From: Octopus bimaculoides
Taxonomy: Eukaryota
DNA length: 64,000 bases
NCBI RefSeq assembly: GCF_001194135.2
Contig: NC_068995.1
Span: forward strand, 28,053,863 to 28,117,862
Direction: 5' to 3'
The stretch's first letter is position 1, and every line of letters starts with the position of its first letter. This document shows, in pieces, positions 9,372-60,827 of this stretch. The position numbers were made by a program, and so were the translations under genes. The notes beneath the pieces were generated by a model that was not told where the DNA came from, did not search any database, and saw only the letters and a program-made list of their open reading frames with translations.

Positions 9372-10098
9372 TCATCCCAAAGATAAAGACAATGCACTTT
9401 CTTGATTGGGAAGAGAACCATGTGCTTCACTGGTAGGATTGGAAGCAACATCACTTAAGCTTAATGATTTCCTTTGATTTGCTTGTAAAATAACTCTTCC
9501 CTCATTAGAATCCAGAGTTAAGGTATTTTTTTTGCACTGAAGGAAGTGTTGCTCTACAGTTTCTGCAACAGTCATCTTTTTCTGATCTGATCCTGAAGTT
9601 TCAGCAGTAGCAACTGAGATGCTAGGCCAGTTATCAAGAGTTTGATGTCCATCAGTTACAGAGAGTATTGAAAAGCATGAGTTTGTAATACTATTTAAAG
9701 TTTCAATAAAAAATTGGTCATGTTTAACATCTGTTTTGTTAGTTGAGCTATGTGATGTCTCAGGGGAAGTTCTATCATTAGTGGTTTGTGACTGTTTACA
9801 AATGTCTTTTTGATTTGGACTAGAAAATGGAAATAATATAGAAGTAGGGTTTGAATTTGTTGTCATAAATTCATCTGGTAGATGTGTAGAATTTGATGTT
9901 TCTATTATCTTCTCTAAATTATCAGGTTTTTCATAGAAGTGTTGTTTACTTATATAACTTCCTTCTAAATCAGTGAAAGATCTCTTCACTATGTTTTCAT
10001 CCATGTCATCCAAAGGCTCCAAAGGGCAATGATAAACTGCAATGATTGTTGGAGACATTTTGGATTCTTGAAATGCTGATACTGTTGTCACATTGAAT
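9372..10098 (-). CDS. CEP97: Terminal coding exon: FN3 F/G strands (FNVTTVSAFQESKMS) plus S/T-rich low-complexity tail, TGA at 9374-9372
   Basis: Acceptor ttattctcttttattctaactag| at 10099; 727 nt uninterrupted frame (ORF 9372..10232); phase 2 matches the previous exon across a 138-nt intron. Confidence 0.85.
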
Positions 10099-10236
10099 CT
10101 AGTTAGAATAAAAGAGAATAATTTATTAAATATGATAAGGACATAAAGAAAGTGAACATTATAACTAAAGAAACCAATGAAATAATGAAAAATACCATTA
10201 AATAAACAATTAAAATTCTTTTTAAGATTCACTTAC

Positions 10237-10333
10237 TTATAAGTTAATGATGGAATTAAGTCTGAAATTATAATTCTAGTCTGTGATTTAGGCACAAGAG
10301 CTTTTGGTTGCCCATTAATGTATATTTTGAAAC
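10237..10333 (-). CDS. CEP97: FN3 middle exon (GFKIYINGQPKALVPKSQTRIIISDLIPSLTYK), phase 1->2
   Basis: Acceptor cttctgttgcag|, donor TATAA|gtaagt; 97 nt; GFKIY and L.P...Y are FN3 consensus motifs. Not in the ORF track. Confidence 0.88.
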
Positions 10334-10591
10334 CTGCAACAGAAGATTTGAAAGATTTATAAAGAGCTTTTCAGAATCAATTTGCTTCTCCATAGAACTA
10401 GTAGTTGTGTTTAGTTTGTCTAACATTATGCAATTATGAAATAAATCTTCACCTGGGTAGACTGAAAGACAGTCAAAAGTGAATTTTCCTCACAACCAGA
10501 TGAATATATATGAAGACGGGAAATACAAACTCCAGCAAACACACACATCCTACCTAGAAAAACTAATCATTTGGGAAGGATGCCAATAATA

Positions 10592-11348
10592 CAGGGTGTC
10601 CCAAAAGTCACTGATGGGTTTCAATTTTTAGTAACTTCTTAATTTTACAAATAAATGCATGAAATCTTGATACAATATAAATGACATAATGGAAATTAAT
10701 ATGCACAAGTCAAATTTTGCAACACCACTGAATCACATATGAAAAATGACATCGCTTAAATGGCAACCATTTTCCAAAACTTGCACCATAATACCCTGAA
10801 GAGTTTTAGATCTCACTTCTCTGATTTCTCTATTGATGTTCTTCAGTTGCACCAGAGTCTCTGGCTTGTTGACGTAAACACTCTCTTTCAGATATCTCCA
10901 CAAAAAAAAATCTGGTCTAACCAAGTCTGGGGAACATGAAAGCCAGTTGACATTGCCGTAGCAGGAGATTATTCTCTCTCCAAAGCACTGCTGTAGAAAC
11001 TGCATTGTTTCTCTTGCGGCATGAGCAGTTGCCCCATCTTGCTAGAACCATGTGTGAGGTCTACTTTGAATGGCCGGGTGCAAAAAGGTCTCAATCATGG
11101 ATACCTGAAAGAAAGGGTTGACATCAACAGATTGGAGACCCTGGTGCAACTGAAGGAGAACATCAACAGAGAAATCGGTGCAAGCTTTGATGTCATTTTT
11201 TTGCATGTGATGTAGTGATGTTGCAAAATTTGACTTGTACATATTAATTGCCAATATGTCCCTTATATTGCATCAAAATTGCATGCATTTGTAAAATTAA
11301 GGAAGTTATTAAAAATTGAAACCCTTCAGTGACTTTCGGGACATCCTG
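10592..11348. mobile_element. Foldback derivative of a DD41D (rosa/Visitor-type) Tc1/mariner element
   Basis: CAGGGTGTCCC...GGGACATCCTG ends flanked by TA; long inverted arms; transposase C-terminus on both strands; WF*QDGATAH to SPDLVRPD gives 41 residues between the catalytic Ds. Confidence 0.85.
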
Positions 11349-11559
11349 TACATGAAAGTAATCACAAGGCAGTAACTTTGCTTATTATAGGATATATTAT
11401 TAGTGCCGTTGCACTGTTGAATACTCTAAGTTGGTTATTTCTATATATTAATACAAATAAATTATTATTATTATTTCGTATACACACAACAGATGAGACT
11501 GTTGGTAAAAAAAAACACTTCTTAACATCGAGCTACAACAAGTAACCTTAGATGCTAAG

Positions 11560-13240: not shown

Positions 13241-13279
13241 TTAAGTATTCTTCCTAACACATTATCCATTATTATTAAT

Positions 13280-14889: not shown

Positions 14890-16876
14890 ATTACATGGCT
14901 ACTTTGAATGAAATGCTTCAAAACATGGAGTTACACATAATGGAACTTTGCAAATTTTACACATATAACGGGATTCTTTGCAAATTTTACACATATAACG
15001 GGATTCTTTGCAAACTGGCTTTCCATAGGCATCCCATTTTTTTGCACATTCCACACACTTTCTTGTGGGAAATTTCTTCTTTTCTGTGAGAGGAATATCC
15101 ATGGGAAAATGTTCAAATGAGTACTGAGTAGGATGAGATGAAGATGGTCATCCAATTCATTGACGAGGAACATCAACATGATTTTCAATAACTTCAAGTC
15201 TGTATTTCATATGAGACATTAGTTTTGCTGTGGCTGCATTCATTTGAGTCAATGATTCTTTATAAAGTATGTATGAATTCCACACTGCCAGTCCATCATG
15301 TGAAAAAACACCTTCTTGTACTACCTCTTTCCATGTTTTTGGGATACGGGGTAATCAACTAAATGTTGGTTGAGTTTGTCAACTACACCAATAGTGAAGT
15401 TGTAATCATAAACCACTTGTGGCTTTATTATCTGTTTCCTTGGATGGATTATGAATGGTAGAGATCATAGTAACATCTTTTGTATCCTTCTATTTTAGTG
15501 CCATCACCTTTCCTCTTTGAAAAGCACAAATTTCACTTTTTTTTTTTTGGCAAATCCTTTCTTGTGAGATGTATTGTTTCTAGAAAATCTGTGTAATTAG
15601 CTACTAAAATATCTGCTAGTTCTGGATAAGCATAAAAATTGTCCACAGTTAGGCGATATCCTTTTCTCAGCAAAGGTTCCACAGGATTCATCACTATTCA
15701 TGGTGTCATAGTAAGTTCTTGATATTTGTTGCTAATTTGGGTTCCCTTTTCACAATAAATCATAAATTCCCACACATAGCTAGTGTCAGATTCACATAAC
15801 ATGAAATATTTAACTCCAATCTATTCTTCAAGGGTAAATATTGAACCCAACCCAATCTGCCTTTGTATAACATGAGACTCTCATCAATGGAAATGTCTCA
15901 TTTTAGCATGTATGAATGCTGAAACTTCTGTTGTAGCTTAGAATATATATCATATATTTTATGCAACTTAGGATTTGGGTGACTTGCTTTGTCATAAGAG
16001 TCATTATCAACGAAATGTAGATATTCTTTTATTTTACAAAATCGCTTTAGAGACATGACAGTTCCATAAATTGGCTGTTCAAGAAGAGGATGCTTTGACC
16101 AGTGCATTTCCAAATCCGGTGCCTTTATAATACTTCCAAGTATGTTCACAGCAAAAAATAAACGCATTTCCCTGACTGTAATAAGGTGCCAATTCTTATC
16201 TCTAGGTGAAGTTTGTTGTGCAAATCTATTTGTCTCACTGCACATAAAGTCAACTAAATCATCAAAATAAAGGGATAAAAAAACCAAGGAGTCATTTCCA
16301 AAACATCACAATCAATTGATATTCCTGGGTCTCCAATGAAAGGAAATGGTGGAGTAAAAGGTGCAAGATTATCTCCAACAGGAAGCCGATACCATTGCCT
16401 GGCAGCAAGCAAGGCATCATCATTACTATCATTATCATCATCATCTCAGAGAATAACTTCTGGATCCAATTCACTTGCATTAGAATCTGAAGAGTCAAGA
16501 TTAGCAAAATTCATGTCAATTTCACTGTTGCAGCTCATTTTAAAAATTAAAAGCAAAAATGCAAAATGTGTCCTTGGAATAAGTAAACGTATGTTCGTAT
16601 GTGTGTGCTAATGATGAATGATTGGTAAGTGCAATGATGTGAGACGTGAGTCATGTTACTGAAGTGAGAGCATGAATGGCATGATGTGCAGCCAGATGTA
16701 TGATTAGGACAAACACTTGTTTACACCTGAAAAGCACCGTAGAAGAGTTGAGTTAGTCAAGATATTCTGTCCCAGCCATTATTTGAGAGAATAACTTTTG
16801 GACGAGATATTTCGTACAACTCTGAAAAAGGTCAAACATACAAAAACGAGATATCTTGCCATTGCCAGGCAAGGGG
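14890..16876 (-). mobile_element. piggyBac element (PGBD4-like transposase pseudogene)
   Basis: 5' end TTAA|CCCC at 16880-16873 with repeated cgagatat subterminal motifs; acidic N-terminus; ETNRFAQQ, PDLEMHWS, MS..RF..IK.YLHF.DN; cysteine-rich C-terminus; several frameshifts; 3' TIR not found. Confidence 0.88.
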
Positions 16877-18485: not shown

Positions 18486-18518
18486 TTATCATTTAATATA
18501 GTTTATTAATGCTGCTAA

Positions 18519-19719: not shown

Positions 19720-20385
19720 AATCATAATCCTTTCTACTACAGGTACAAGGAAGGGGCTAGTCGATTACATCAACCCTAGTCTTCAACTGGTCCTTATTTT
19801 ATTGACCCAAAAGGAAGAAAGGCAATGTTCACCTTGGTGGAATTTAAACTCAGAATGTAATGATAGATGAAATGCCACTATGTATTTTGTCTGGTGTACT
19901 AACGATTCTGTCAGCTCACCACCTTAATAATAATAATAATAATAATCCTTTCTACTGAAGGTACAAAGCTTGACATTTTTGGGGAGGGGACTAGTTGTTT
20001 ATATTAATCCTAGTGTTTCATTGGTACTTCATTTACCAACATTGAAAGGATGAAAGGCAAAGTCGACCTTGGCAGAATTTGAACTCAGAACATAGCAGCA
20101 GATGAAATATCGCTAAGTATTTCACCTGGCATGCTAACGATTCTGCCAACTCACTGCCTTACTTAATAATAATAATAATCCTTTCTACTATAGGTACAAG
20201 ACATGAAATTTGAGGGAAAGGACTAGTCTGGTACTTATTTCATCAAGCCCAAAAGGATGAAAGGCAAAGTTGACCTCAGCGGAATTTGAACTCAGAATGT
20301 AGTGACAGATGAAATAACGGTAACCATTTCTCCCAGCCTGCTAATGATTCTGCAAGTTCACCGCCTTCTTAATAATAATAATAAT
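19720..20385 (-). mobile_element. Three head-to-tail SINE copies separated by (TAA)n
   Basis: Unit taataatcctttctact...aaggatgaaaggcaaagt.gacc...gaatttgaactcagaa...ctaacgattctgcca repeated three times. Confidence 0.9.
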
Positions 20386-21239: not shown

Positions 21240-23420
21240 TTGGCTTAAGGAGATGAAAGGAAGGTGAGCATAAGAGAGGATATGGACAGCGGGTCATGGG
21301 AGGAAAGGAGAGAATGGATACATTCATAAGGGTGTGAAGGGGGAGTAACAGATGGTTAAAGATGGTAGTGATGAATGTGGTGAGTAATGAAGAAGGGTGG
21401 AGGTGCAGTTGAAGGGAGACACCAGTATGGAGAGGGGTAAGGTGAAAGATATATGACTGGTTCAGGAACAGATCAGAAAGTAATAGAATGAGGTGAAAGG
21501 TGCAGAAGTGACAGAGAAGGGGCTATAGTAAGTGGGGCATGATGATAGATAATAGAGGGCATTGAGAAGGATAGCAGATACAAGAGGTGTTAAGAATGGA
21601 GCATAGTAGAAGGGAGAGAGTATTGGCTGAGGGCATAGGAAGGAAATGATTGTAGAAATAGTGAGCAGAGATAATAATGAGAAATGGAAGTGGTTCTGGG
21701 GGAGGGGGTATGTAATATGTGCTGATTCAGCTCTCAGGTGATTACAAACAGCCAAGTAATACCATACATAGGAGAGTGATAAGTGTTAGAAGATGAAAGT
21801 TGGGGGAAATATCAGAGAGGCGGTGGGTTTTTAGGATATCATTTTTGCTGTGATGGTCAGGTCTTCTTGACCACAGTAAATCACCAACCATCTTGGTCCT
21901 TTGTCATCTGCTCTGCAAGGCTCTGCATTTTGAGATCCACCTTCAATAATTTGTCCCATGTCTTCTGGGGTCTCCCTTTTCCATATGTTTCATCCATATT
22001 AAGCATTTGGACTTCTTTATGTAACTGTCCTCATCCATATGCATCATATGATCAAGCCAATTCAGTCTTTTCTCTTGCACACTACATGTGATTCCTCTTA
22101 TGACCAATTTTTCTCTCAGTACATTAGCATTCTGTCTTCCGTGCACTCTGACATTGCTCATCCAATAGAGTATACTAGTTTCATGCGTCTCTAGTCTTCA
22201 TATGTCCTCTGAATTCAGGGCTCATGTTTCACTACCATATAGCATTGCTGTTCATACACAAGCATCATACACTCTGCCTTTCACTCATAAGAGAGACAGT
22301 TTGTTGACAACAGCAGTAATAGCTCCCAGAACTTTCTCCATCCTATTCTTATTCTAGCAACTATATTTTCAGAACATCCCCTTCTACTGCTAATTAGATT
22401 GCATAGGTAATGGAAACTATCTACAACCTCTAAGGTATTTGAGAAAAACTAATTTCCATCAGCCCTTAGTCTTTATGGCACCAGTGCATCTTTCACATAC
22501 AAACACTACTTTCTCTGTTAGCATTGCTGTGATTCCTTTGCACTTTTTGAAGTCCATAGATTGCACTGGGTACACCATATGGGATTCCTGACTCCACCTT
22601 TCTCACATATTCAACAGGGCTATTTTACCTGAAGGAGGTAAAAATGCTACTAGTTTTCATATTTACAAGAATTTTGGTCTTTGCTAAGTTAATTTTAAGT
22701 TTCACTTTCACACTAGGAATTTCTTTTCTATTTCTGTAACAGATTCCACTATGAAAACAAGTTTATCAGCATATAGTAGTTCCAAAGGGCAGCTAGTCTT
22801 GAAATTTTCTGTTCTGCCCTGGAAAATAATGAATTGGAGGGGATTGAGAACAAGCCCTAGTGAACACCTACCTGTACACTAAATTCACCACAGTACTCAT
22901 GGCTCTCACCTTACTGACAGCACCCCTGGACATGGCTTGTCTAATTCTGTTTTTAATCAGTCAGACAATAAAATCTCTATAACTTTTATGCTCTGGTTCA
23001 GCAATGTAATACCTCTGTAATACTTGTATCTATTATCTAAGCCATCTCCTTTACTATTGTAGCAGCTGACTATAATGCTGCTACACCAGTCATTAAGGAT
23101 AACACCTTTCTGAATAATCTGATTAATTATACGGATGACTAGACCGGATCCTATCTGTATTTGAGTGGTAATTCCCAGTGGACCAAGGGCTTCCCTGTCT
23201 TCATATCCAGACACCCTGACTACCTCAATCACCTTATTCACCTATTTCTTTACCAAAAATATATGCCCACCACCTATTCATTTAGAAGAATTTGTATGTA
23301 TGTTCCTTGCCACAAGCAGTCTAGATGAGACTCCTGTCCATTGTGCCTTTTGCACACAACACACATCTACATGTCCCTATTCAAGTATTTCAACAATCTC
23401 ACCAGACCTATTTTTCATTG
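21240..23420 (-). mobile_element. Heavily degenerate RTE LINE (pyrimidine-rich 3' UTR subfamily)
   Basis: Fragments NDWCSSIIVSCY..KGD.LD..YRGITLL and QEKRLNWLDHMMHMDED; APE start at about 23400. Confidence 0.75.

Positions 23421-23719: not shown

Positions 23720-23721
<2 letters not shown>

Positions 23722-23774
<53 letters not shown>
23722..23774. repeat. (AT)n microsatellite
   Basis: Directly visible. Confidence 0.98.
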
Positions 23775-23777
<3 letters not shown>

Positions 23778-27158: not shown

Positions 27159-27230
27159 CCCAAACACCATCATTAATTTCTTTTCCAGAACAAAGAGCTG
27201 CATTGTTTTCCAAGAACATCTTTGGTGAAT
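27159..27230 (-). CDS. CEP97: CEP97-like exon (SPKMFLENNAALCSGKEINDGVW), phase 1->1
   Basis: Strong acceptor tttctttctttcttcatatttatcag|; donor GGG|gtatga is weaker; 72 nt symmetric exon. Confidence 0.62.
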
Positions 27231-29326
27231 CTGATAAATATGAAGAAAGAAAGAAATTATGGTAGTTTTAACAATGTTTTTTCTAAAATTTTTGTTCAAG
27301 AATAATTATGGACTGGTATGGCTATAACTGTGTTTTAATATTAATGAAATATAAAATTTCTATTCAAATCAGTTTTTTAGTATGAGAATTTCTAATAATA
27401 TAACATTTAATATGTAATTATTATCGACTATTAAAAAAAAACATAACATGAAAAGAAATCAAATTTAGAACTGTAAGCTATAAAACAGTTTAATACCAAT
27501 CCTAAGTTTGGTTGGCGTTAATACTGAAATCTGTTGTTGATGATGATGATGATAATGATGACAACAACATAATTAACTTAAATGATACTGTTTTCCTGAA
27601 ATCAATTCAAGCTGGTACTTGGTATTAGACAATTTTAAATACTTCTTGATTTTTGGAATAGAGTTCATCATCATCATCGTTTAACGTTCGCTTTCCATGC
27701 TAGCATGGGTTGGACGATTTGACTGAGGACTGGTGAAACCGGATGGCTACACCAGGCTCCAATCTGATTTGGCAGAGTTTCTACAGCTGGATGCCCTTCC
27801 TAACGCCAACCACTCTGAGAGTTGATAAAAAGAATGTATTTTCATTGTCATAGATATTTTTCACATTCACAGGCATAGCTGTGTGGTAAGTTTGCTTCCC
27901 AACCACATGATTTCAGGTAGCAAAGCCTTTTCAGTAGATTTGTTAGATGGAAACTTAAAGAAGCTCATTGTGTGTGTGTGAGACTCTCTCCTTAATTTGG
28001 CATTGTGAAATAGTTGTAAACAAGTGTCACTGTTATAAAGATAGTCTCTGTCTACTCAAGGGGAAAAATTACTTACTTGGAAACATACAAGGATTAGCAA
28101 CAGGAAGGGCATCTAGCCATAGAAAATCTACCTCAACAAATTCTTTCCAACCAATGCTATCATAGAAAAGTGGACATTGGAATGACAATGATTATGACTT
28201 CTTCTGCTGGCTTAGATTAAATGACAGTAATATGATAAGATCATTATTAACTCTTAAAGTCCAGTAATGCTATCTGTATATAAATTTCCTAATTTTGTTA
28301 GAAACTTGAAATTTTGATGAAATGCAACTGCATTTCATCAAAATTTCAAGTTCAGTATAAAAATCATAAAAATGTAACTACTCCATGAATTTGGAGGAAA
28401 TTTGCCAATATGGCATGATGATTGTTTATGTACGTTATGAATGTAGTTTTTATTCTTTTATTTTTACCTGTTGTCATATCATTTTACCTGCCAAGATATG
28501 CTGAATAGAGTTAAGTTGATTACATGAAATTGTTTTCACATATACTCAGAAGTTATTATTTCTTGGACAAAAAATTCCTGTATCAGAGCTAAATTTGTGA
28601 TCTGCTTATTCTGTGTGACTTGAAAACTGTATAACTTCCATGCAATAACTATGCTCTCCTCACAAACCAACCAGTATGCAGGGACTCTACATTTGAAATA
28701 TATTAGCAAATTAATGTTTTTATAAAATCCTTATCATTCTCTCACAAAAGCATTGGTACAATATGAACTTCATGAAAACTCTATTCCTGTTCAATGAAAT
28801 ATCACACTAATTATCTTATCCAAGCTCAAGCTCTCTTTCTCTAATAAAATCACTAATAAATAAATAAAAACAAATGTTTAATCAACAATATCACCAAAAT
28901 TCTAACTCATCACTTGAGGTATTAATCACTATTATGCAACAAAACTTGTAAATTAAGTCAATCCAATGAGTAATCCAAACTTAGCCAATATGATAAATTA
29001 CACTGATAATAGTTTCACCCAAATTTCATTAATCAACTTTTGGAAGCAATTTTATATTCATTTTCTCCAGATAATATGTTTTGAAGAGCCCTTATATGAT
29101 TTTCAAAAAATATCATTCATGATAGAATAATATTCAGCATAGGTTAGATGAATATATTATTGATATACTGTTTTACAGCCAGATGTGCCTTCCTATCACA
29201 AAACCTTATCTGTTTTCCGAGTTAAGAATCTCTCAATCCTCATATCTTCATATGTACTTCTATCCTAGGTGCAAAAAAACAATTCACACATGAATACAGA
29301 AATAACCCTTCTAATGAAAGAAATAC

Positions 29327-29399: not shown

Positions 29400-29576
29400 C
29401 TAAAAATTAAAAGATAAAAAAAATGTTCATATTATCATTTCACTCCTTACAACACTACTATACACACATACTTATTTAACCACAAGCATAAAGAAGTATA
29501 TTTCAACCATGTGGTTCCAAGTTTAGTTCCACTGTGTGGTTCCATGAGCAAATTTCATTTATTCTAGTCCTGGGCT

Positions 29577-29689
<113 letters not shown>

Positions 29690-30439
29690 ATGCTTGTGTG
29701 TCTGTCTTGACATTGTGCAATAGTTGTAAATGCATATCACCATGCACATACCAGCAGTACCCCTTGGTTTGAAGTTTTAGTGAAAACATGTCTCAGCATG
29801 GGAAATACTACTTTGCTTGGAAACAGGTGAGGGTTGGAAGAGCAAAGGGCACCTGGCTATAGAAAATCTGCTGCAACAAATTCAGTCTGACCTATGCAAG
29901 TATGGAAAAGTGGAGGAATATTGTGTGTGCATATAATTTGATTTATAAATCTTTTTTTTTGCAAATTTACCTTGTTTTTATTTGTTATTTATCTGTAAGG
30001 TGTATGAAAAATTTAAATTAATTTGTATTGCGAATCATTATCATATTTATTTTTGTGTATTTATGTATGTATTTAGAAGATGGTATGGGTATTTCATTTT
30101 CTAGTTTCCTTCAAATATAAATTCCAATGTTTCATTGTTTTACCTTTACGGCACACTTGTCTTATGTGCATCAAGTTCAACTGATAGATAATCCAAAAAT
30201 TTGAACAAATTTTCTATATTGAAATTTTGCTGTATACCCAATTGACTATCAGCTAATAAATCATTTTCAATGAAGATATTGAAATAAAATTTAAATAACT
30301 TTATATTTTGTTGAATTTACCTGTGTTTACCTGAAATTAGATTCGCTTTGAGGCAAAAATTATGCAATAGATTTGGTTAAGAATCTTCTGTTAAATTGGG
30401 TTCCAAAATTTACATTTATATTTTGATAAATAGTTAGAA

Positions 30440-31810
30440 ATGTAGTTCTAAAAGGGTCATAGCAAGACAAGATTTCACCAGCTTTTGTTCCTTTTGGGCC
30501 TGATGGAAGTCATCTGGCAATACAAATACCACTCCTTCCATTTGAGATTTATTTTCACATAAATTCTAAAAAGTCCTGCCCAGAGTCTCCAGAGCTCTGC
30601 TGCCATTTGGCATCTCTTATGGATTTGTTAAATTCCCGAACTCTTGGCATTATTGCAAACAGGTGCATCATTTGAATCCAACTCCAAAAGGAACTTGAAA
30701 GCAGAATATGCTGTACAATCCCCAGGAAGAAGTGCGGTTGCAATGCCTGAAGAAAAACTTTATATTGATAGACTTTGTGAAACAATAAAACTGATAAAGA
30801 ATGTCTTCTCAGATACACCATGAATACTGAAGTAGCAAATTCCAACTTCTTGCTGTCAAACCCTGTTAAAAATAGCAGAAGAAACTGCCCTTTTGCATTT
30901 TGCATTTGATCTGTATATCCTGTTTTCATGCAAGGGTACATCTTCAGTAAGGTCCTCATGATACTTAAGCCAAAGCTGCATTTGCAATGTTTTAAGAATA
31001 TGATGACAAAAACATTAAGACACTTATATAAATATAGTGAAAAGAACATGAAGACATGAAGAATAAAACATCTTTGGAATTTGGCTATTTTTTGAAGAAA
31101 TTTACTTGAATCTCACACTTCATAGAAAAGTTGTAGAAAGAAGCATTCATGCTGACTTCTTGTCATCAAATCATCATGTAACATAATATACCCCATGACC
31201 AGACATGTTTTCATGGAAGATTGGAAATGAAGGACACTGCTTGCATGATGGTGACATTTGTTTATGACTATCACAAAAGGCAAGGAGACAGTAACACACT
31301 CTCACATACATACACATCAGTCTTCTTTCAGTTTTTGTCTACCAAATCCACTCACAAAGTTTTGTTCAGCTCTAGAAGACATTTGTTCAAGGTGCTGTAT
31401 AGTGGGACTGAGCCTGAGACCATGTGGTTAGGGAGCAAACTTCACCCTACACAGCCACACATATGCTTAGTACCTGGTGTACATAGTAAACTCTCTTTGT
31501 CATAATTAATGTCAAGTTAACTTTCAACAGATATCTTGCTTTCTGTATCTCTATTGCTTGATGTTCCTTGTATTGTAAAACCTGAGGGTACAGCAATGTT
31601 TTTGCAGTGTTGTGTCCCTTACACCTTGTGCTTGCTGTGCTGTGGTTGTTTAAGTGAAGTAAACCCACTGGCTAGTATGGTGCTGAATACTGGGATATCT
31701 TCATGAATGGGAAGGTCAATAAATTGCCAGAAAGCCTCACTACTGCTGATGCACTGTCCTTTCAGGAACTGATTAACTTCACTGCAGCTATTCCACTTTG
31801 TCTATCTATC
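30440..31810 (-). mobile_element. Helitron RepHel remnant (pre-helicase region and helicase N-terminal motifs), split by a SINE
   Basis: Hand translation of frames not in the ORF track: EVNQFLKGQCISSSEAFW..DLPIHE; AKTLLY; QLWLKYHEDLTEDV; SSGIATALLPG.CTAYSAFK..L; DDFHQ. These match Helitron EI.QY..GRYISS.EA.W, ASSGIAATLLPGGRTAHSAFK and GDFRQ. Confidence 0.8.
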
Positions 31811-31858
31811 ACATTGGTAAATAGAAACTGTATGGAAGCCTGTTGTATGTGTGTGTGC

Positions 31859-31904
<46 letters not shown>

Positions 31905-32673
31905 GTGTGTGTGTGGATCTTCACATTGATACCATTTGGGTGACAGTGATGTATTTATGTCTCCCAAAAATAATATGTCCTGCAGTTTAGCTTTTGTCAG
32001 TAAAGGTATATATCATACTTTCAAATCAGGTCAAAGTTGGCAACAAGAAGGGTACCTGACTATAAAATACTACCTCAACAAGTCCTATGCAATCTATGCC
32101 AGCATCGAAATAGCAGATGCAAAAATGATGATGATGATAATGATGAATATNNNNNNNNNNNNNNNNNNNNNNNNNNNNNNNNNNNNNNNNNNNNNNNNNN
32201 NNNNNNNNNNNNNNNNNNNNNNNNNNNNNNNNNNNNNNNNNNNNNNNNNNNNNNNNNNNNNNNNNNNNNNNNNNNNNNNNNNNNNNNNNNNNNNNNNNNN
32301 NNNNNNNNNNNNNNNNNNNNNNNNNNNNNNNNNNNNNNNNNNNNNNNNNNNNNNNNNNNNNNNNNNNNNNNNNNNNNNNNNNNNNNNNNNNNNNNNNNNN
32401 NNNNNNNNNNNNNNNNNNNNNNNNNNNNNNNNNNNNNNNNNNNNNNNNNNNNNNNNNNNNNNNNNNNNNNNNNNNNNNNNNNNNNNNNNNNNNNNNNNNN
32501 NNNNNNNNNNNNNNNNNNNNNNNNNNNNNNNNNNNNNNNNNNNNNNNNNNNNNNNNNNNNNNNNNNNNNNNNNNNNNNNNNNNNNNNNNNNNNNNNNNNN
32601 NNNNNNNNNNNNNNNNNNNNNNNNNNNNNNNNNNNNNCACACACACAGATGAAATGGACGTGTGTGTGTGTGT

Positions 32674-39513: not shown

Positions 39514-39621
39514 TTGTATTTGAAGAGAGTTATAAGACTCCTTTAAAATATCAATTTCTGATAGAAATTTCTTGGTAGCTGGTTGTTCATCGGCTGATAG
39601 ATGTGTTTGCTTCAGATGGAA
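39514..39621 (-). CDS. CEP97: CEP97-like exon (FHLKQTHLSADEQPATKKFLSEIDILKESYNSLQIQ), phase 0->0
   Basis: Acceptor catgtttcttttcag|, donor TACAA|gtaagg; 108 nt; only phase 0 is open. Confidence 0.8.
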
Positions 39622-41474: not shown

Positions 41475-42718
41475 CCCTTTTGCCACCAACCCGGCTGAAA
41501 AATTTTTTGGTTCAAATGACCAACCTGGCTGTAGCTGGCCGAGAGTACCCATAGATATTTAAATGTGAATTTGAACACAAATTTTGTTAATACATCCATG
41601 GAAACATGTGATTTCACTTTGTAAATAGTTGAGTAATAGTATCCGATATTATTTGTCGTGATATCTGAACTCAGTGAATTTTAGGAGATTTTTTTCCACA
41701 TTTTTTCAGCGTCAATTTTTTCAACTTTGAAAATGGATAGGAGTTTCATGCTGTCAAGCAGTGATTCTGAATTTGAGGGTTTGTCAACGGAAGATATAGA
41801 GATATTGAGAAAAAGAATGAATGAAGTACAAAAGCACATGGTGTACAAGAATCATCATCATCATCATCGTTTAACGTCCGCTTTCCAGAGGCTGCACCAA
41901 GCTCAATCTGATCTGGCAAAGTTTCTACAGCTGGATGCCCTTCCTAATGCCAACTACTCCGAGAGTGTAGTAGATGCTTTTACATGACACCGGCACAAAA
42001 GCCAGTCAGGCGGTTTTGGTAATGACCACGCTCAAAAGATGTTTTTTACATGCTACCTGCATGGGAGTCAGTCCGGAGGCACTGGCAATGACCACACTCG
42101 AATGTTGTTTTCCACATGCCACCGGCACATGTGCCAGTAGGGTGACTCTGGCAAGGATCACGCTCAAATGGTGCTTTTCACATGCCACTGGCATGGGAGC
42201 CAATCCGTGGCCCTGGCAACAATCACGCTTGGATGTGCTTTTAACGTTCCACTGGCACGAGTGCCAATCAGGCGGTACTGTTATCAGCCATGCCAGCGAT
42301 TCTGATTTGTTTTCACTTGCCTCAATAGGTCTTTGCAAGCAAAGTTCATTGTCCAATGAATGAGGGGTACTCATAAGTGGGTTAGTTACACCCACTGGCA
42401 TAGGCCATGGGCCATGGTCACACTTGGCTTGTTGGATCTTCCCAGGCACAGCATATCTCCAAAGGTCTCGGTCACTAGTCATATTTTGCTCAGTTTACCA
42501 GTATTGACCTGTAATTAGAGTCAGTTTGAGACAATAGTTATGCAATAGAATTGATTAAGAACCCTTTCTTCAATTGTGCTCCAAAAATCACATTAATATG
42601 TTGATAAGTAAAAAGGTTACAGTTGTTTAATGAAACTGGTCTAAATTCATGATTATTTTAGAATTTAATTGAAACTCATGAGGGGTGTACTTTGATCAGA
42701 AATACAGTAATGAAAGGG
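41475..42718 (+). mobile_element. Non-autonomous piggyBac-like element carrying an RTE 3'-end insertion (41851-42482)
   Basis: TTAA|CCCTTT ... AAAGGG|TTAA ends; acidic MDRSFMLSSSDSEFEGLSTEDI stub interrupted by (CAT)n plus RTE 3' UTR on the minus strand. Confidence 0.6.
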
Positions 42719-44280: not shown

Positions 44281-44454
44281 CAGATTTCCATCATCAACAT
44301 TTTAACATTCATTTTCCTACATTGCATGTATTGAATAGTCTGTAGTATAGCATACCACAACTTATTTTAATCTTTTGTCATTTCATCCAGAGCAATACAG
44401 TCATTTCTTTATACTTTTAATGTCTAGCAGCTCACTCAGTCCATCTATGCTCTA

Positions 44455-47400
44455 TCTCATCATCATCATTGTTTGATGTCCGTTTTCCATGCTGGCATGG
44501 GTTGGATGGTTTGATTGAGGTCTGGAGAGCCAGCGGCTGCACCAGGCTCCAATCTGATCTCGCAATGTTTCTACAGCTGGATGCCCTTCCTAAGACCAAC
44601 CACTCCGAGAATGTAGTGGGTGCTTTTTACATACCACAGGCACAAGAGCCAGTCAGGCAGACCTGGCATCGATCATGTTCAGGTGGGGCTTTTTACATGC
44701 CACTGGTACAGGAGCCAGCCAGGCAAATCTGGCATCGACCATGTTTGGATGATGCTTTTTATGTGCCACCGGCATGGGAGCCAGTCAGGGGGCATTGGTC
44801 ATAGTTACAATATTGGTTTTATTTGACTCAACAGGTCTTCTCAAGCATATCATATCGCCTGACACATCAGGGGCACTCTTAACTGGGCCAGACATGCATG
44901 GCTGCGATCTCACTTTAGTTGCAGGGTCTTCTCAATCACAGCATATCTCCAAAGGTCTCCGTCTCCAGTCATTGCCTCTGTAAGGCCCAATGTTTGAAGA
45001 TCATGCTTCACCACCTCATCCCATGTCTTCCTGGGTTACCCCTTCCACAGTTAGGGAGTGGCACTTCCTCACACAGCTGTTCTCATCCATGCGTAACACA
45101 TGACCATACCAGTGCAGTTGTCTCTCTTGAACACCACATCTGATGCTTCTTATGCCTAACTTTTCTTTCAGGGTGCTTACACTCTGTCATGTATGCACAC
45201 TGACACTACACATTCAGCTGATCATACTAGCTTAATTTCTTTCAAGCCTACACATGTCCTCAGCAGTCATGGCCCATGTTTCACTGCTGTGTAGCATGGC
45301 AGTTTGCACACATACAACATACAGTCCACCTTTCATCCTGAATGAGAGAGACCCTTAGTTGCCAGCAGAAGTAGGAGCTCTCTGAACTTTGCCCAGGCTA
45401 TTCTTATTCTAGCCACTACACACTCAGAGCAATCACCCCCACCACAGACTTAGTTGCCTAGGTAGCAGAAGCTATTAACTACTTCTAGTTTCTCCCCATG
45501 GCATGTGATGGAATCTGTTTTCTGTACGTCTTCAGTACTTATTGCCCCTGTGCATCTGCCACACACAAAAACTATCTTCCCGGTTAACTTCCTTTGATAT
45601 TGTTGCACCTTTTATGTGTCCATAGCTTACACTGGATACATCGTATGGAGTTTCTACCCATGCCTTTTCTACAGATCAAGCAGGGCATTCTACCTGAAGG
45701 TGTCTGTGATTTGACAGAATTCCTACTTACTTTTGTTTTTGCTAGGTTAACCCTAAGGCCCTTCGATTCTAGACCTTGCTGCCACACCCTAAATTTCGTC
45801 TCTAGTTCTGGCAGTGACTCAGCTATTAGAGCAAAGTCATCATTATAGAGGAGCTCCCAAGGGCAGCCTGTCTTTAATTCCTCTGTTATTGCCTGGAGGA
45901 CTATAACGAATAAGAGGGGGCTCAAGACTGATCCTTGGTGAACCCCTACTTCTATTCGGAATTTTTTTACTATACTTGTTGCCAACTCTCACCTTAGTGA
46001 CAGCATCCCTGTACAGGGTTGTACAGCTCTTACGAAACACTCATCTATCCCCAGTTTCTGCATTGACCACCAGATAAGGGATTGGGGGACCCTGTCAAAG
46101 GCTTTCTCCAAGTCAACAAAAGTCAAGTACAGAGGTTTATCTTTAGCTAGATATTTCTTCTGCAGTTGCCCTACCAGAAATATAGCATCAGTGGTGCTTC
46201 TGCCTGGCACAAAACCAAACTGCATCTCATCTAGGCTAACTCTCTTCCTAATTAGTTGGGCTATGACCCTCTCGGTAACTTTCATTACCTGATCCAATAA
46301 TTTGATACCTCTGTAGTTATTTCTATCTAAAGCATCACCCTTGTAGCAGTTGACTATGGTGCTGCTACACCAGTCATTGGGTGTGACTCTTTCATGTATC
46401 ACCTGATTGACTATAGGAGTGACTAGGCTATGGCTGACACTGCCAGATATTTTAAGCATCTCTGTGGTGATTCTTGATGGACTGGGGGCTTTCCGTGTCT
46501 TCATATCCTTAATTGTTTTATCTACCAGGGTACTGCAGATTCAGGTAGCTGGCCCCTCAATTGAGCCAACCTTTGGCAGACTCTGCTCCTCCCATTCATT
46601 CTCCACATTCAGCAGTCTTTCATAATGGCATCTCCAAGCCTCTTTCTTTACAGAATCATTAAGCGCAAGGGCACCATCATCCATGTAGACACATTTATCT
46701 CCTATGATATCATGGTGTTCTCTCACACACTGTCTTGCAATCCGAAATACCTCAGTTCTTTGGCCCTAACGTCACTGAACATTGGCAAACTTCTTCTTTT
46801 CTGCTACTCCCTTGGCTAAATATACCTGTGTCTTAGCTTCCCTTTTGGCTATCTGATAGATTCTTCTGCTACCCCCGCTCTTCCAGGCCATTTTCTTTGC
46901 TCTAATGGCCCAGTCTATAGTATTGTTCCACCACCATGTTACCCTAGGTCTGGAAGGGACTTTGCACCAGCCACAGATTTGGTCTGTGGCATTTAGCAAG
47001 CTGTCTCGCAGGAATTCCCAGCTGCCTTCTATGTCACAGGACTGTAGCTCCTCCTCCCTCTCATCAAATTTCTTGGTAAGGATATCCCTAAATCTTTGAC
47101 TAGGTGAAGGGTTCTTAAGCTTCCAAGTCCTTCTTTTCTAGATTGATCTGCTTTTTGGCTTCCTTCTGGCCTGTTTAATATCACTAATAACTAGTCTATG
47201 CTGGGGGGTACATTCTTCACTAGTGAGCGTCTTTGTATTTGAGAGCAACCATGCATCCCGCTGTTTGGTGAGAATGAAATCAATCTGGCTAGCAGAGTCA
47301 CCTGATTGATAGGTTATCAGGTGGCTAGCTGGCTTCCTGAAGTTGGTGTTGCAGATCAATAGGCTATTTGCATTGCAGAACTCCAGGAATCTAGTTCCCT

Positions 47401-47490
47401 CTTCATTTCTGAAACCAACTCCATGGTCCCCACCATGGAAGATAGCAGGTTGCTGTCTTACATGCCCATTAAAATCTCCAGTCACAAAGA
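44455..47490 (-). mobile_element. 5'-truncated defective RTE LINE
   Basis: GDFNGHV, NYRGIKLLDQ, QFGFVPG, DLEKAFDRV, HQGSVLSPLLF, YNDD; tandem 3' UTR and (GAT)n tail. Confidence 0.92.
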
Positions 47491-48196
47491 TGAAACCATT
47501 GTAATACTACTTCAGAACAATAGGTCACAGCTAATTCCAGGCTTTTTAGTTATTCTGTAATTGCTGCCCATATCTTACCTTAAATGGGCAAAATTTTGTA
47601 GCCAGTATAGGTAGTATTTCTGTGTTTTTTCCCCATGCATTTCTTAATCTACATATACTTTCACTTCAATCATCTGCCTTCATTAGATTACAGAAACTAT
47701 TTTCACATCTACAAAGCCATCTTTCTTTCATGGTATATTTCCATTGCTAACTACATTAGTCACAACTGAAGATTTTGTTTATGATGATTTTCTGGAAAAC
47801 CTGTATTTGTTCTTAATTCATGTATCATTGTACCAACAACTATAGCAAAGAGCAGTGGAATGGTGATTACCTTTATCATGATCATTCATGTAAAAAGATT
47901 TCCGCATTGTATTTAGATATAAAAAATACTAGTGGTAACATAGAACACTTCCAGTAGATTGGTATTGAAAGGGTACACATTCTCATCATACTCATTTTAC
48001 TTTTTCCTAGTACACAAATTAACTGATAACTTTTTGTTTACATGAGTGAAAAATTTTGTATGAAATTTCTGCTTCTACATTTCCATCCATAACTTTCAAA
48101 ATTATCTTCTTACTTTCTATAATGTAGGAGGACACTACAGTGACCATAGGTTCATCCATTTTCTCTGGAATAAAAATTATAAAGAAGAAAACTTAC

Positions 48197-52189: not shown

Positions 52190-53565
52190 AGAAGTTTAAG
52201 GTGTGGAAGCAAGGACTAGAATCGAAGGGCCTTAGAGTCAACCTAGCAAAAACCAAAATCCTAATAAGTAGGAAGGTAGATAAAACACAAACCCCTTCAG
52301 GTGGATGGCCCTGCTCAGTATGCAGTAAAGGAGTAGATAGTAACTCTATAAGATGTACCCGGTGCAAGCTATGGACACATAAGAGGTGCAGCAATATCAA
52401 AGGCAGATTAACTACGAAGTTAGTTTTTGTTTGTGGCAGATGTTCAGGTGCAATAAATACTGTAAACAAACAGGAAACAACTTCTATCTCATTCCAGGGA
52501 GAAAAACTAGAGGTAGTTGATAGCTTCCGCTATNNNNNNNNNNNNNNNNNNNNNNNNNNNNNNNNNNNNNNNNNNNNNNNNNNNNNNNNNNNNNNNNNNN
52601 NNNNNNNNNNNNNNNNNNNNNNNNNNNNNNNNNNNNNNNNNNNNNNNNNNNNNNNNNNNNNNNNNNNNNNNNNNNNNNNNNNNNNNNNNNNNNNNNNNNN
52701 NNNNNNNNNNNNNNNNNNNNNNNNNNNNNNNNNNNNNNNNNNNNNNNNNNNNNNNNNNNNNNNNNNNNNNNNNNNNNNNNNNNNNNNNNNNNNNNNNNNN
52801 NNNNNNNNNNNNNNNNNNNNNNNNNNNNNNNNNNNNNNNNNNNNNNNNNNNNNNNNNNNNNNNNNNNNNNNNNNNNNNNNNNNNNNNNNNNNNNNNNNNN
52901 NNNNNNNNNNNNNNNNNNNNNNNNNNNNNNNNNNNNNNNNNNNNNNNNNNNNNNNNNNNNNNNNNNNNNNNNNNNNNNNNNNNNNNNNNNNNNNNNNNNN
53001 NNNNNNNNNNNNNNNNNNNNNNNNNNNNNNNNNNNNNNNNNNNNNNNNNNNNNNNNNNNNNNNNNNNNNNNNNNNNNNNNNNNNNNNNNNNNNNNNNNNN
53101 NNNNNNNNNNNNNNNNNNNNNNNNNNNNNNNNNNNNNNNNNNNNNNNNNNNNNNNNNNNNNNNNNNNNNNNNNNNNNNNNNNNNNNNNNNNNNNNNNNNN
53201 NNNNNNNNNNNNNNNNNNNNNNNNNNNNNNNNNNNNNNNNNNNNNNNNNNNNNNNNNNNNNNNNNNNNNNNNNNNNNNNNNNNNNNNTTTTGTGCGGGTG
53301 GCACATAAGATGTACCATCCTGCGGGTGGCACATAAAAGACACCATTTCGAGCGTTGCCGTTTTCGTGCGGGTGACACGTAAAAGCACCCACTACACTCT
53401 CTGAGTGGTTGGCGTTAGGAAGGGCATCCAGCTGTAGAAACTCTGCCAAATTAGATTGGAGCCTGGTGTTGCCATCCGGTTTCACCAGTCCTCAGTCAAA
53501 TCGTCCAACCCATGCTAGCATGGAAAGCGGACGTTAAATGATGATGATGATGATGATGATGATAT
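52190..53565 (+). mobile_element. RTE LINE 3' fragment spanning an N gap, ending in (GAT)n
   Basis: WKQGLESKGLRVNLAKTK...CSVCSKGV..NSIRC..CKLWTHKRCS; typical 3' UTR. Confidence 0.92.
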
Positions 53566-53599
53566 TTTACCAGCTGCAGAACTGAGAGTACTGGGTGGG

Positions 53600-57035: not shown

Positions 57036-57710
57036 ATAATGGTTTCAAATTTTGGCATAAAGCCAGCAGTTTTTGAGGGGAGAGGAAGTTGATTACATCA
57101 ACCTCAGTACTTGATTGTGAAAGGACGAAAGGCAAAGTTGACTGTAGTGGAATTCAAACTCAGAACATAAAGTGCCAAAAAAAATACTGCAAGACTCTAA
57201 TGGTTCTGCTAACTAACTACCCGAATAATAATAATAATCCTTTCAACTAAAGGCACAAGGCCTGAAATTTGGTGGGAGGGCACAACTCAATTACATTGAC
57301 GCCAATGTTTCACTGGTATTTAATTTATTGACCCCGAAAGGATGAAAGGCAAAGTCAACCTTGGTGGAATTTGAACTCAGACTGCAGCGACAGGCAAAAT
57401 ACCTATTTCTTTACTGCCCACAAGGGGCTACACACAGAGGGGACAAACAAGGACAGACAAACGGATTAAGTCGATTATATCGACCCCAGTGCGTAACTGG
57501 TACTTAATTTATCGACCCCGAAAGGATGAAAGNNNNNNNNNNAAACGGATTAAGTCGATTATATCGACCCCAGTGCGTAACTGGTACTTAATTTATCGAC
57601 CCCGAAAGGATGAAAGGCAAAGTCGACCTCGGCGGAATTTGAACTCAGAACGCAGTGGCAGACGAAATACCGCTAAACATTTCGTCCAGTGTGCTAACAA
57701 TTCTGCCATC
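57036..57710 (-). mobile_element. Cluster of second-family SINE copies (three to four, nested or tandem)
   Basis: Repeated aaggatgaaaggcaaagtc.acc..gg.ggaatttgaactcaga cores with (TAA)n tails. Confidence 0.85.
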
Positions 57711-58185
57711 ATCATCATCATCGTTGTTTAACATCCGCTTTCCATGCTGGCACGGGTTGGATGGTTTGATTGAGGACTGGCAAGCCAGAAGGCTGTACCA
57801 GGCTCCAATCTGATCTGCCAATAATAATAATAATAATGTTCTGAGTTTGAATTCCACTGCAGTGTGATCACCTGACCAGACACTGGAAACCAAACACTGT
57901 CATGGTGAAAAAAAAAGAGGAAGAACATGCATGATAATCAACATAGCATGTCCCAGTGACAACAGAATCAAAGAAAAAGTAGACGTGGTACCGGCACAAG
58001 GCCAGCAATTTTGGGGACTTATTTTATTGACCCTGAAAAGATGAAAGGCAAAGTCGATCTCGGCAGAATTTGGACTAAGAATGTAAAGATGGACAAAATG
58101 TTGCTAAGCATTATGCCTGGATGACAACAACAAAACCCAACTTTGAAGACTACCTTTAATTCATATAATGGAATTGTTTTCTTAC

Positions 58186-58330: not shown

Positions 58331-59049
58331 CTGTCAGAATGGAAGCAAACAAAACATATTATCAGTGTTCAAATGTCCATTTCTCAATGGTAAAAATTGT
58401 TGGGTTGGTTTAGAGTAAATGATAATTCTATGTTAGTATCTGTTACATCTAACACACGGGTTGGTTATCACTAATGTAACTACATTTATATATTTATCAT
58501 TTTCATTGAATAATCAATGCATTTCCTGGGAGTTTTTATGGTTTCTAACATTGGTACAAAGTCATAAATTTAGTTGGAGTTGATTAAATCAAGACTCGTA
58601 CTTAACCAAGAAATTTCCCCAACCCCAGAAGGGTTGACATGTAATGAAATGAATTTCCTATACAAATTACTGCATGCTATATTACTGTCCATGTAATTTT
58701 TCTCTTTCACATAGTTTAAATGCTAATGAAAAAATATATTTCCTACAACTGATAAATATGCTAACATACCTATGCAAATTATTGTGTATTACTTTATTCT
58801 CTAATGTATCTTGCTTCACAGGTGTACCTATAGGACATCTTATTGGAATATAGGAGATATAACTTTTGTTAGTGAATGTGTGAACTAAGTGATATACTGC
58901 ATCAAAAGAAAAATAAATGTAAATAAAGATGTTTATCACTAAAAAGTGGCCATCTAGTCAAGTCAAAGTAGTAATATGTGTTTCTGCAGCCCAATTTCAA
59001 ATAGTCTAGCATTAAGGTGAGAAAAACAATATATAAAAAAAAAGTTATT

Positions 59050-59400
59050 GTAGCTTTCTACAGGAGTGGTTTTCTGAACATATCATTCTAGCACCCAAAA
59101 ATGACACTGTGCAGGTAATTAATGTTACCACCATTTAACAGGAACTAAGCCAATTCCCACGGTACAAGTCAGTTGACATTGTAGCTAATGTTAACAATTC
59201 CATTGCTGTTCCTTCTTACAATCTGCAATTGATAGTAAGTTACTACAAAATTTGAATGCACTAAAACTCTGTGAAGTCCAAGGCTCACTTTCAAGCACCT
59301 CCAGCTTCCTGTAGCACTGCTTTTTCAATAACCATCAACAAGTCTTAGCGATAATCTCTCAAGAGTTGTTGTTTAGTTGAACTGACAAGTCTATGTTTTT
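59050..59400 (-). mobile_element. Possible Tc1-like transposase remnant
   Basis: Weak, fragmentary similarity only. Confidence 0.3.
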
Positions 59401-60361
59401 CTCATTGTCAACTTTATGTTGCATGCTCATGCGGTGCCACATAAAAGCACCTGTGAGGTGCTACGTAAAAGCATCCAGCACACTCTGTAAAGTGGTTGGT
59501 GTTAGAAAGCACATCCAGCCATAGAAGCCATGCCAAATCAGACTGGAGTCTGGTGCAGCTTCCCAACTTGCCAGCTCTGATCAAACAGTTCAACCCATGC
59601 CAGCATGGACAATGAATGTTAAATGATGGTGGTGATGATGAAACATTTTTTCATCAAATCACAGAACAAGAAATGTGGTCTATCCCAGTGTTCTTGCAGA
59701 ATAAAAAACATTTCTGTTAGAATTGTTTCAGTTTTATGTATTGCATGTCAATTTATAATTACAAGGAGATATATGAAGTAAAATACAGTAATGCCTTGAT
59801 ATATGAGTTAATTTGTTCCCAGAGACTGCTCATAAAGTGAAAATTCATAAAGCAGAGCAATAATTTCCCATACTAGCAATGTTAGAAATTGTAATTCGTC
59901 CCCAGAAAAATATTTTACTGATAAAATTTATAATACTCGTAAATAAATAGCAATAAAACAACAGTAGTATGTAAAGAATATTTCATGTAAAGTAAAAAGA
60001 ATTTTGTGCTTGGAAAATAAAACTTGTAAACCTAGGATCTTGTAAAGTGGGGTATTACTGTACAATGATAGTATTTTCTTGAGTAAAAAGAAATAAATGA
60101 ATACAATCTGAAATAGATCATAAAACACCTGGACTTATTCAATTTTGGACAGAATTTGTTTTATAATAAAAAATTTAGGCAAATAATCAAAAAGTACTTT
60201 ATAAAAAAAACTTGCAATAATTTATTCACTTATAGGAATGAGCTCAAATTTTTTTTAGCAGAAATTTATACAGACCACTACCTCAATGATGTGATCTATG
60301 CCAGAACATGAACATATAACATATTACTTATCTCATAACTTTCTTGATGATAGAAATATCA

Positions 60362-60591
60362 TTGCAGCATGGAAGGTGTTTATAAGCCATTTAAAAACAC
60401 ACAAAAACCGTTAGATTCACTTCAACATTTAAATTTAATTTGTCACAACATTTAGCACGGAATTTTGTCAGTGAACAGGTCGCGGTCTCAAAGCGATGAA
60501 AATATTTTGACAAATTAAATTTAAATGTTGAAGTGAATCAAACAGGTTTTGTGTATTCTTAAATGGCTTATAAACACCTTCCATGCTGCAA
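60362..60591. mobile_element. Palindromic MITE-like element (about 85-bp arms)
   Basis: ttgcagcatggaaggtgtttataagccatttaa...gattcacttcaacatttaaatttaatttgtca mirrored at 60508-60591. Confidence 0.85.
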
Positions 60592-60721
60592 CTGTTTTTG
60601 TTTCAGCACACCATCTCAGATCAGGTCAATTGCTATGCAAGTACATCTCCGGAAATATCATTAAACAATTGAGAAAATAAAGCAGATACACAAGAAATGT
60701 AAAGTAATGAATACTACTCAC

Positions 60722-60827
60722 AGCTTGCTAAATATAAATTACTTTCTGCAGATACAATGGTAAATTTTCCTGGAGTGATTCTGAATATATCTGAATTTCT
60801 CTCTATGCCTAGCCTATTGGATTTTAC
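60722..60827 (-). CDS. CEP97: Probable internal exon of CEP97-like gene (VKSNRLGIERNSDIFRITPGKFTIVSAESNLYLAS), phase 0->1
   Basis: Acceptor tctactttcag|GTAAAA and donor AAGCT|gtgagt; 106 nt open only in phase 0; end phase matches the IQ exon. No recognisable motif, so the assignment rests on splice signals and phase. Confidence 0.6.

Follow-up and report, generated by a model that had tools for sequence, protein, structure and literature searches.

Does the minus strand of the 64,000-nucleotide stretch of Octopus bimaculoides DNA studied here (the window) hold one gene that joins an IQ motif to a fibronectin type III (FN3) domain, and, if so, to which family does this gene belong? A preliminary description, made from the letters of the window alone, had proposed a CEP97-like gene spread over nine short exons. 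CEP97 is the partner of CP110, caps the distal ends of centrioles and restrains ciliogenesis. Our analysis suggests, with a probability of roughly 0.85, that positions 9372-60827 represent the 3' two-thirds of the octopus CEP97 gene, beginning shortly before the IQ motif and ending at the stop codon. The architecture, consisting of a leucine-rich repeat (LRR) region, IQ motif, helix, FN3 domain and tail, is already known, and the locus is an ordinary, poorly annotated orthologue.

Exon structure of the octopus gene

The exon model was rebuilt from stop-free stretches and splice signals, with the earlier coordinates set aside. Nine minus-strand exons splice in frame into 1590 nt, encoding 529 amino acids followed by a TGA stop, which is exactly the length given in the preliminary description for its nine in-frame exons. 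All 529 codons are open, the exons show a pyrimidine tract with an AG acceptor and a GT donor, and the splice signals around the eight introns are canonical in 16 of 16 cases (8 acceptors and 8 donors). The peptides quoted earlier also sit at their claimed positions; FPPADFTLVSTSKKTVVLSW, for instance, is encoded by 18111-18052 on the minus strand.

The upstream exons encode the IQ motif and the helix that follows it. Exon 1 (60827-60722, minus strand, as are all exons below) is the first in the window but internal to the gene; it encodes VKSNRLGIERNSDIFRITPGKFTIVSAESNLYLAS, starts in phase 0 and carries one extra nucleotide at its end; judged by eye, it resembles the 'RTHSDYxPGKYA' region of molluscan CEP97. 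Exon 2 (58330-58186, 145 nt) encodes the IQ motif AATCIQAAWRGYYCRN and the start of the post-IQ helix, and matches molluscan CEP97 in tblastn with E values of 5e-9 to 1e-4. The helix is continued by exon 3 (48272-48197, 76 nt; QQMQCDKKSNLLRQLMEIVQVLCNK). Exon 4 (39621-39514, 108 nt) reads FHLKQ...FLSEIDILKESYNSLQIQ, is in phase 0 at both ends with strong AG and GTAAGG sites, and weakly matches, in collinear position, the 'LEKTCASLQSQ' motif that the orthologues conserve. The two bridging exons are provisional: exon 5 (29399-29327, 73 nt; VKHLHETLHTFMMGSFKYFEAKNK) is entered in phase 0 and left in phase 1, while exon 6 (27230-27159, 72 nt; SPKMFLENNAALCSGKEINDGVW) has phase 1 at both ends and a strong acceptor.

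The FN3 domain is split over the last three exons. Exon 7 (18191-18006, 186 nt) encodes a linker, FN3 strands A-B and the next loop (FPPADFTLVSTSKKTVVLSW...ADKLLG), and exon 8 (10333-10237, 97 nt) the middle of the domain (GFKIYINGQPKALVPKSQTRIIISDLIPSLTYK), with tblastn matches to molluscan CEP97 at E=1e-4 to 0.8. Exon 9, the last (10098-9372, 727 nt), encodes FN3 strands F-G (FNVTTVSAFQESKMS) and a 220-residue tail before the TGA stop; its 242 in-frame codons plus TGA lie inside a 286-codon stop-free stretch in DNA of 36% GC. Serine and threonine make up 25% of the last 220 residues, compared with 14% of the remaining protein, in agreement with the S/T-rich tail that had been described behind the FN3 domain. 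Two tail motifs, 'FIETLNSITNS' and 'KKMTVAETVEQHFL', are collinear with molluscan tail motifs, and a profile search of the 9.3 kb downstream found no further tail exons.

Relationship to CEP97

When octopus exons 1-5 were used as the query, a single cluster was matched, that of the Octopus sinensis 'uncharacterized protein LOC115220282' (254 aa), which is the sole close database relative and a truncated model of the same locus. Residues 1-222 of this protein served as a stand-in for the spliced octopus protein in an exhaustive phmmer search. The matches were proteins of 1100-1600 aa from scallop, freshwater mussel, limpet, clam, pond snails and oyster. They were reached by way of the non-IQ mid-region (E=2e-10) as well as the IQ region, and were followed at lower scores by the CEP97 proteins of lungfish and stick insect. 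Multi-IQ proteins such as ASPM were considered as best relatives of the IQ region and rejected, because they score higher only through the summing of 7-19 short repeats; the long single-stretch matches that continue past the IQ motif into the helix are the molluscan CEP97 orthologues and the CEP97 proteins of lungfish and stick insect. To these latter two proteins the post-IQ region has a library-wide E value of about 3e-4, and a vertebrate-only CEP97 profile built from 60 sequences matches residues 26-109 of the octopus model with 41.1 bits, in an alignment that crosses from exon 2 into exon 3 unbroken. The earlier assignment of the IQ region to CEP97 thus holds. The Pfam IQ match itself is borderline and context-dependent, with 19.0-21.1 bits for exon 2 against a cut-off of 20.3. 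When LOC115220282 was searched against PDB sequences, the matches were limited to a weak one with a myosin IQ motif and spurious ones with insect defensins that reflect a Cys pattern.

The molluscan proteins share one Pfam layout, namely LRR (residues ~50-260), IQ (~650), FN3 (~890-980) and a long Ser-rich tail, while the lungfish, insect and priapulid proteins carry LRR and IQ only. The mussel protein matches lungfish CEP97 with 46.6% identity over 425 aa in the LRR region (E=3e-110) and with 52% identity in the IQ/helix region (E=2e-22), and these matches identify the molluscan LRR-IQ-FN3 proteins as CEP97 orthologues. They include Mytilus coruscus 'CEP97', the 'Centrosomal protein of 97 kDa' of Potamilus and Sinanodonta, Ylistrum balloti LOC132549692 and Mizuhopecten LOC110459051. 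Like them, the octopus model has an IQ motif, a post-IQ helix, an FN3 domain and a Ser-rich tail in the same order; unlike them, it is far more diverged and more compact, and an extra intron splits the large mid-exon. A motif search of the window gave no convincing match to the pre-FN3 motif 'SLSPYPSEEE' or to the C-terminal tail motifs KLLQKLQ, HSDD and SFHG.

The vertebrate and insect proteins (human CEP97/LRRIQ2, Xenopus CEP97 and Drosophila Cep97) match the octopus model in the IQ motif and in the conserved helix next to it, but have neither an FN3 domain nor a long Ser-rich tail. In Xenopus CEP97, the IQ-adjacent segment is required for association with Dyrk1a and Plk1 (PMC8719716). No other part of the octopus protein is as well conserved as this segment.

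The FN3 domain is of the CEP97 type

The preliminary description had read a complete FN3 domain across three exons, and Pfam agrees: fn3 (PF00041) scores 27.3 and 26.2 bits on exons 7-9, above its gathering score of 25, with positions 2-79 of the 84-position profile aligned. The lower value is that of the spliced protein (E=9.5e-6, residues 222-304). A profile of the FN3 region from 21 invertebrate CEP97 proteins scores 55.9 bits on the octopus model, twice the generic Pfam fn3 score, and gives no match (best E=3.8) among 101 CEP97 sequences of vertebrate, insect and priapulid origin. The octopus domain aligns to the CEP97 FN3 family unbroken, with the core W, Y and LTYK residues kept. For the corresponding scallop region, the AlphaFold model is a beta sandwich (pLDDT 84.8) whose best PDB matches are FN3 domains; its structural neighbours, RIM-binding protein, neogenin and titin, are generic.

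The introns of the window are full of transposable-element open reading frames, which raises the question of whether the FN3 exons form an open frame by chance or derive from a repeat, such as one of these elements. Set against this are the fn3 score above the gathering threshold, the score of the family-specific profile, intron sites inside the domain that are the same as in scallop (see below), and the open frame of 286 codons around exon 9 in AT-rich DNA. Together, these observations effectively refute a chance or repeat origin.

Since FN3 domains also occur in microtubule-associated scaffolds, as the preliminary description had pointed out with MID1 and the TRIM family as examples, we compared the model with TRIM class C-I, MID1 and FSD1. 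In these proteins, too, a single FN3 domain comes after a helical region, and they act in the centrosome/microtubule field; the likeness is one of layout only. They possess COS and SPRY domains of their own (and RING/B-box in the TRIMs). Neither the octopus model nor any of the scanned orthologues gave a Pfam match to COS, B-box or SPRY/B30.2, and membership in the coiled coil-COS-FN3-SPRY class of TRIM C-I and FSD1 was rejected on that ground. The structural matches of the modelled scallop FN3 domain point to no TRIM/MID1 type in particular.

Gene structure supports a join of IQ and FN3 exons

A profile of ten molluscan orthologues, run against the raw reading frames of the window, gave matches on the minus strand only and in collinear order: the IQ exon (E=7e-12), exon 4 (weak), the middle FN3 exon (E=1.8e-5) and a tail motif (E=0.09). 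Such an arrangement is not due to chance. On the spliced model, the same profile scores 43 bits on the FN3 domain, 7 bits on the tail and 47 bits on the IQ motif and exon 3, where it runs over the exon 2/3 junction and recognizes the post-IQ helix that is specific to CEP97.

For a comparison of gene structure, the introns of the scallop CEP97 gene were located exactly and set against the octopus model. Three exons have identical lengths in scallop and octopus, namely the IQ exon (145 nt), exon 3 (76 nt) and exon 8 (97 nt). The others are shorter in octopus: exon 4 measures 228 nt in scallop and 108 nt in octopus, exon 5 85 and 73 nt, exon 6 90 and 72 nt, exon 7 198 and 186 nt, and the last exon 1621 and 727 nt. 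The intron phases (1, 2, 0, 0, 1, 1, 1, 2) are equal at all eight introns. At six of the eight, the flanking residues also match, while the two introns that flank exon 6 are comparable by phase and order only. The matching sites lie before the H of the IQ motif, inside the R that follows the post-IQ D (scallop) or Q (octopus), between LQxQ and V, after LLG and after LTYK. Specifically, octopus exon 7 ends within the LLG-Y(F) codon in phase 1, exactly as the 198-nt scallop exon does, and the last scallop exon likewise begins after LTYK in phase 2. Because scallop has an intron in the same phase between LQSQ and V, the octopus donor at 39514 corresponds to a conserved intron position, and because the scallop series of exons from IQ to the last exon is shared, the IQ and FN3 exons belong to one gene. 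The join from 39514 to 29399, on which the earlier nine-exon proposal hinged, is thus supported both by orthologues that carry the two domains and by the agreement in exons and phases. We regard the gene structure as the strongest evidence that the IQ and FN3 exons belong together.

The alternative is that two genes are present, a short IQ protein of 254 aa that ends at an exon near 56.4 kb and an unrelated FN3-tail gene 40 kb downstream, the splice chain between them being a coincidence. It draws on the RefSeq model of O. sinensis, LOC115220282, which stops after the IQ exon. Unlike the window model, LOC115220282 ends in a non-conserved exon, lacks exons 3-9 and has 134 extra N-terminal residues that lie outside the window. 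The counterpart of its terminal exon in the window (56455-56354, minus strand; O. sinensis locus sequence 19943-20050) is not part of the conserved gene: it has 88.6% nucleotide identity to O. sinensis, which is the neutral level, and a 2-nt length difference shifts its frame, so that the same acceptor leads into RLFFSHSLQ (9 codons) and then a stop. We read the 3' end of LOC115220282 as mis-called or non-conserved, and the 254-aa model is probably a truncated CEP97 prediction. Against two genes also speak exon 3, which lies past the end of the O. sinensis model and extends the CEP97 helix unbroken; the CEP97-type character of the octopus FN3 domain; the orthologues in at least four phyla that hold IQ and FN3 in one protein with the same spacing; and the exact match of exon order, number and phases to scallop. 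We consider two genes very improbable.

Points that weigh against the proposed gene

Several observations weigh against a single CEP97 gene across 9372-60827. Among 445 phase-compatible candidates, exon 5 ranks fourth by homology, with a score of 3.7 bits that is not significant; by splice scores, only one other candidate is as good. For exon 6, homology to the orthologues was not detected (rank 272 of 531 candidates), alternative in-phase donors lie at 27168 and 27129, and skipping of the exon preserves the reading frame; the exon is needed for the length of 529 aa and, like its counterparts in the orthologues, has a W as its last residue before the junction. Both exons are held provisionally on the basis of splice-site quality, phase and position. 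Read-through past the donor at 39514 (39513-39463, minus strand) yields VRKIQKGFQNISFMV, which resembles VSQLQEALRSVSSVV of the orthologues, and a model with this read-through scores 88.0 bits compared with 85.1 bits for the model with exon 5. As a longer exon 4, the read-through was rejected, since it meets a stop after 19 codons and offers only a poor donor (GTTACT). The resemblance could be due to chance, or it could be a relic of an older exon extent.

Database searches with the downstream half belong here as well. A word-indexed search of a 5.8-billion-protein set with the FN3 domain and tail (335 aa) found no close homologue, which we attribute to the strong divergence of this stretch and to its absence from the octopus models in that set; no annotated octopus protein found in that set includes these exons. 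That no database protein joins the octopus exons, and that exons 5 and 6 bridge them with no homology support, are also the points that a two-gene arrangement could claim. Conservation between the two octopus species was measured on exons 1-2 only.

At the 5' end, neither the window nor the 10 kb upstream of the O. sinensis gene yielded an LRR exon, and LOC115220282 has an in-frame TGA two codons ahead of its annotated ATG (~9980-10003, O. sinensis locus sequence), which leaves the connection to LRR exons unproven. Two features of the O. sinensis sequence were seen beside this site: the nearest acceptor upstream of the ATG (TTTTTTATAG) allows no in-frame join, and an AG inside the exon, in ...TTATTTAAG followed by TGAG, is a conceivable acceptor by eye only.

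These 5' observations lead to the idea of a truncated or decaying CEP97 copy, that is, a paralogue or split gene that has lost its LRR part and either starts at an internal ATG to give an IQ-FN3 protein with no LRR or drifts towards a pseudogene. Octopus does diverge far more than the other molluscan orthologues do among themselves, 'SLSPYPSEEE' is not found in the window, and exon 4 and the tail are much shorter, all of which would fit such a copy. A decaying copy is at odds, however, with 529 open codons and 16 canonical splice signals. It is also at odds with the conservation of exons 1 and 2, which differ from LOC115220282 by 5 nucleotides, all silent, and by no amino acid (nucleotide identity 99.1% and 97.2%, respectively), whereas alignable non-coding sequence of the window is ~92% identical to O. 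sinensis chromosome CM016874.1, a background divergence of ~8%. The exhaustive phmmer search found no second cephalopod CEP97-like protein. In addition, introns in this gene family reach 34 kb, and the LRR exons could therefore lie further upstream. A truncated or decaying copy is, in our judgement, unlikely. The related possibility of a reorganised octopus CEP97, either an LRR-less IQ-helix-FN3-tail protein from an internal start or a fast-evolving paralogue, would rank equally low. A CEP97 orthologue remains our preferred interpretation.

Distribution of FN3-bearing CEP97

The phyletic spread was read from a CEP97 profile search, in which the best 120 of 1330 matches were listed, all scoring above any cephalopod entry; an octopus LRR protein, if one is annotated, would rank below these 120. 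Among these 120, proteins with LRR, IQ and fn3 occur in many bivalves and gastropods, several of them already named CEP97, and FN3 is also present, with coordinates confirmed, in CEP97 of the brachiopod Lingula, the nemerteans Lineus and Tubulanus and the sea star Patiria. The vertebrate CEP97 proteins in the same set all lack fn3. That human and fly CEP97 are without FN3, as the preliminary description had stated, thus agrees with the vertebrate, insect and priapulid sequences.

An FN3 domain has also been published for nematode CEP97 homologues, including C. elegans CCEP-97 (R02F11.4), together with its absence in insects and vertebrates (PMC9020716). CCEP-97 is, like the octopus protein, a CEP97 orthologue, and has an LRR, long helices and a predicted FN3 domain; it belongs to another phylum, its centriole localisation is published, and the likeness is taken from the published description (PMC9020716). 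Consequently, of the earlier suggestion that this lineage has an extended architecture, the FN3 architecture stands and the novelty does not, given its presence in molluscs, a brachiopod, nemerteans and a sea star, and in nematodes according to the same publication. The more cautious wording offered alongside, an ancestral invertebrate feature lost in vertebrates, was the correct reading. With FN3 in Ecdysozoa, in Lophotrochozoa and in a deuterostome, the domain is most simply explained as a feature of the bilaterian ancestor that vertebrates and insects later lost, and we consider this history probable.

Assembly gaps and repeats around the exons

The window has 36% GC, is rich in transposable elements and contains eight assembly gaps. 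The four that fall within the gene span are all intronic and touch no exon: 57533-57542 and 52534-53287 in intron 2, and 33406-34295 and 32151-32637 in intron 4. Since the exons that flank each gap are consecutive exons in scallop, no coding exon is expected in the gaps, and order and orientation are consistent across them. The alignment of the molluscan profile also crosses the exon 2/3 junction with no missing residues. Around the first gap, the alignment to O. sinensis reaches 57580 and resumes at 57403, leaving 176 bases unaligned, including the 10-N gap. Long (CA)n/(GA)n-type microsatellites at 29560-29790 and 31810-32010 lie in intron 4, beside the gap at 32151-32637 and just upstream of exon 5. 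Microsatellite sequence of this type commonly gives assembly gaps.

LINE-type retrotransposon reading frames were observed on the gene strand at 45587-47506 (intron 3), 5400-8895 and 21900-23241 (intron 6), all on the minus strand, with RVT_1 at 45992-46540 and Exo_endo_phos at 8113-8895. The copy at 5400-8895 lies ~480 bp downstream of the stop codon and might relate to the shortened last exon. Intron 6 also holds remnants of a piggyBac-type transposase (14902-16305, minus strand) with matches to DDE_Tnp_1_7 (E=3e-21) and to its zinc finger zf-Tnp_2, scattered over several frames. A short interspersed repeat, '...GHPAVETLxDQIGAWxS...', is present in at least five copies in both orientations (4301-4564, 27677-27799, 41749-41943, 44435-44626 and 57648-57899) and is shared with the O. 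sinensis locus; its probable identity is a SINE-like element. In intron 7, a 102-codon reading frame (...QDGATAHAARETMQFLQQCFGERII..., 10736-11041, minus strand) looks by eye like a fragment of a mariner/Tc1-type transposase, and has no Pfam match at E<=0.001.

Function and significance

From N to C terminus, the 529 residues encoded in the window contain a calmodulin-type IQ motif, the CEP97-specific helix, a poorly conserved linker, the FN3 domain and a Ser/Thr-rich, probably disordered tail. We infer from the family that octopus CEP97 would act at the distal ends of centrioles with CP110 and calmodulin, and that the FN3 domain and phosphorylatable tail may serve as an extra docking or regulatory module that adds phosphorylation sites. 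Compared with its molluscan relatives, the octopus copy is a compact, fast-evolving CEP97 with a shorter exon 4 and tail and with 'SLSPYPSEEE' lost.

The practical gain is a corrected octopus CEP97 gene model. With the O. sinensis model ending after the IQ exon and labelled 'uncharacterized', octopus CEP97 looks absent or fragmentary; the gene in fact runs seven exons beyond that model, over ~49 kb, and these exons encode the FN3 domain and tail. If the doubtful LRR-less arrangement were nevertheless true, the CP110/calmodulin-binding and FN3 part would be split from the LRR part, which would make octopus a natural experiment on the FN3 half alone. The evolutionary point is a modest one, namely that FN3-bearing CEP97 is not confined to nematodes and is found in Lophotrochozoa and an echinoderm as well. 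To our knowledge, vertebrates and insects are the only groups in which CEP97 has been studied in depth. The spread of the FN3 domain does not amount to a new kind of system, but it suggests a function at the centriole cap that work in model organisms has not addressed.

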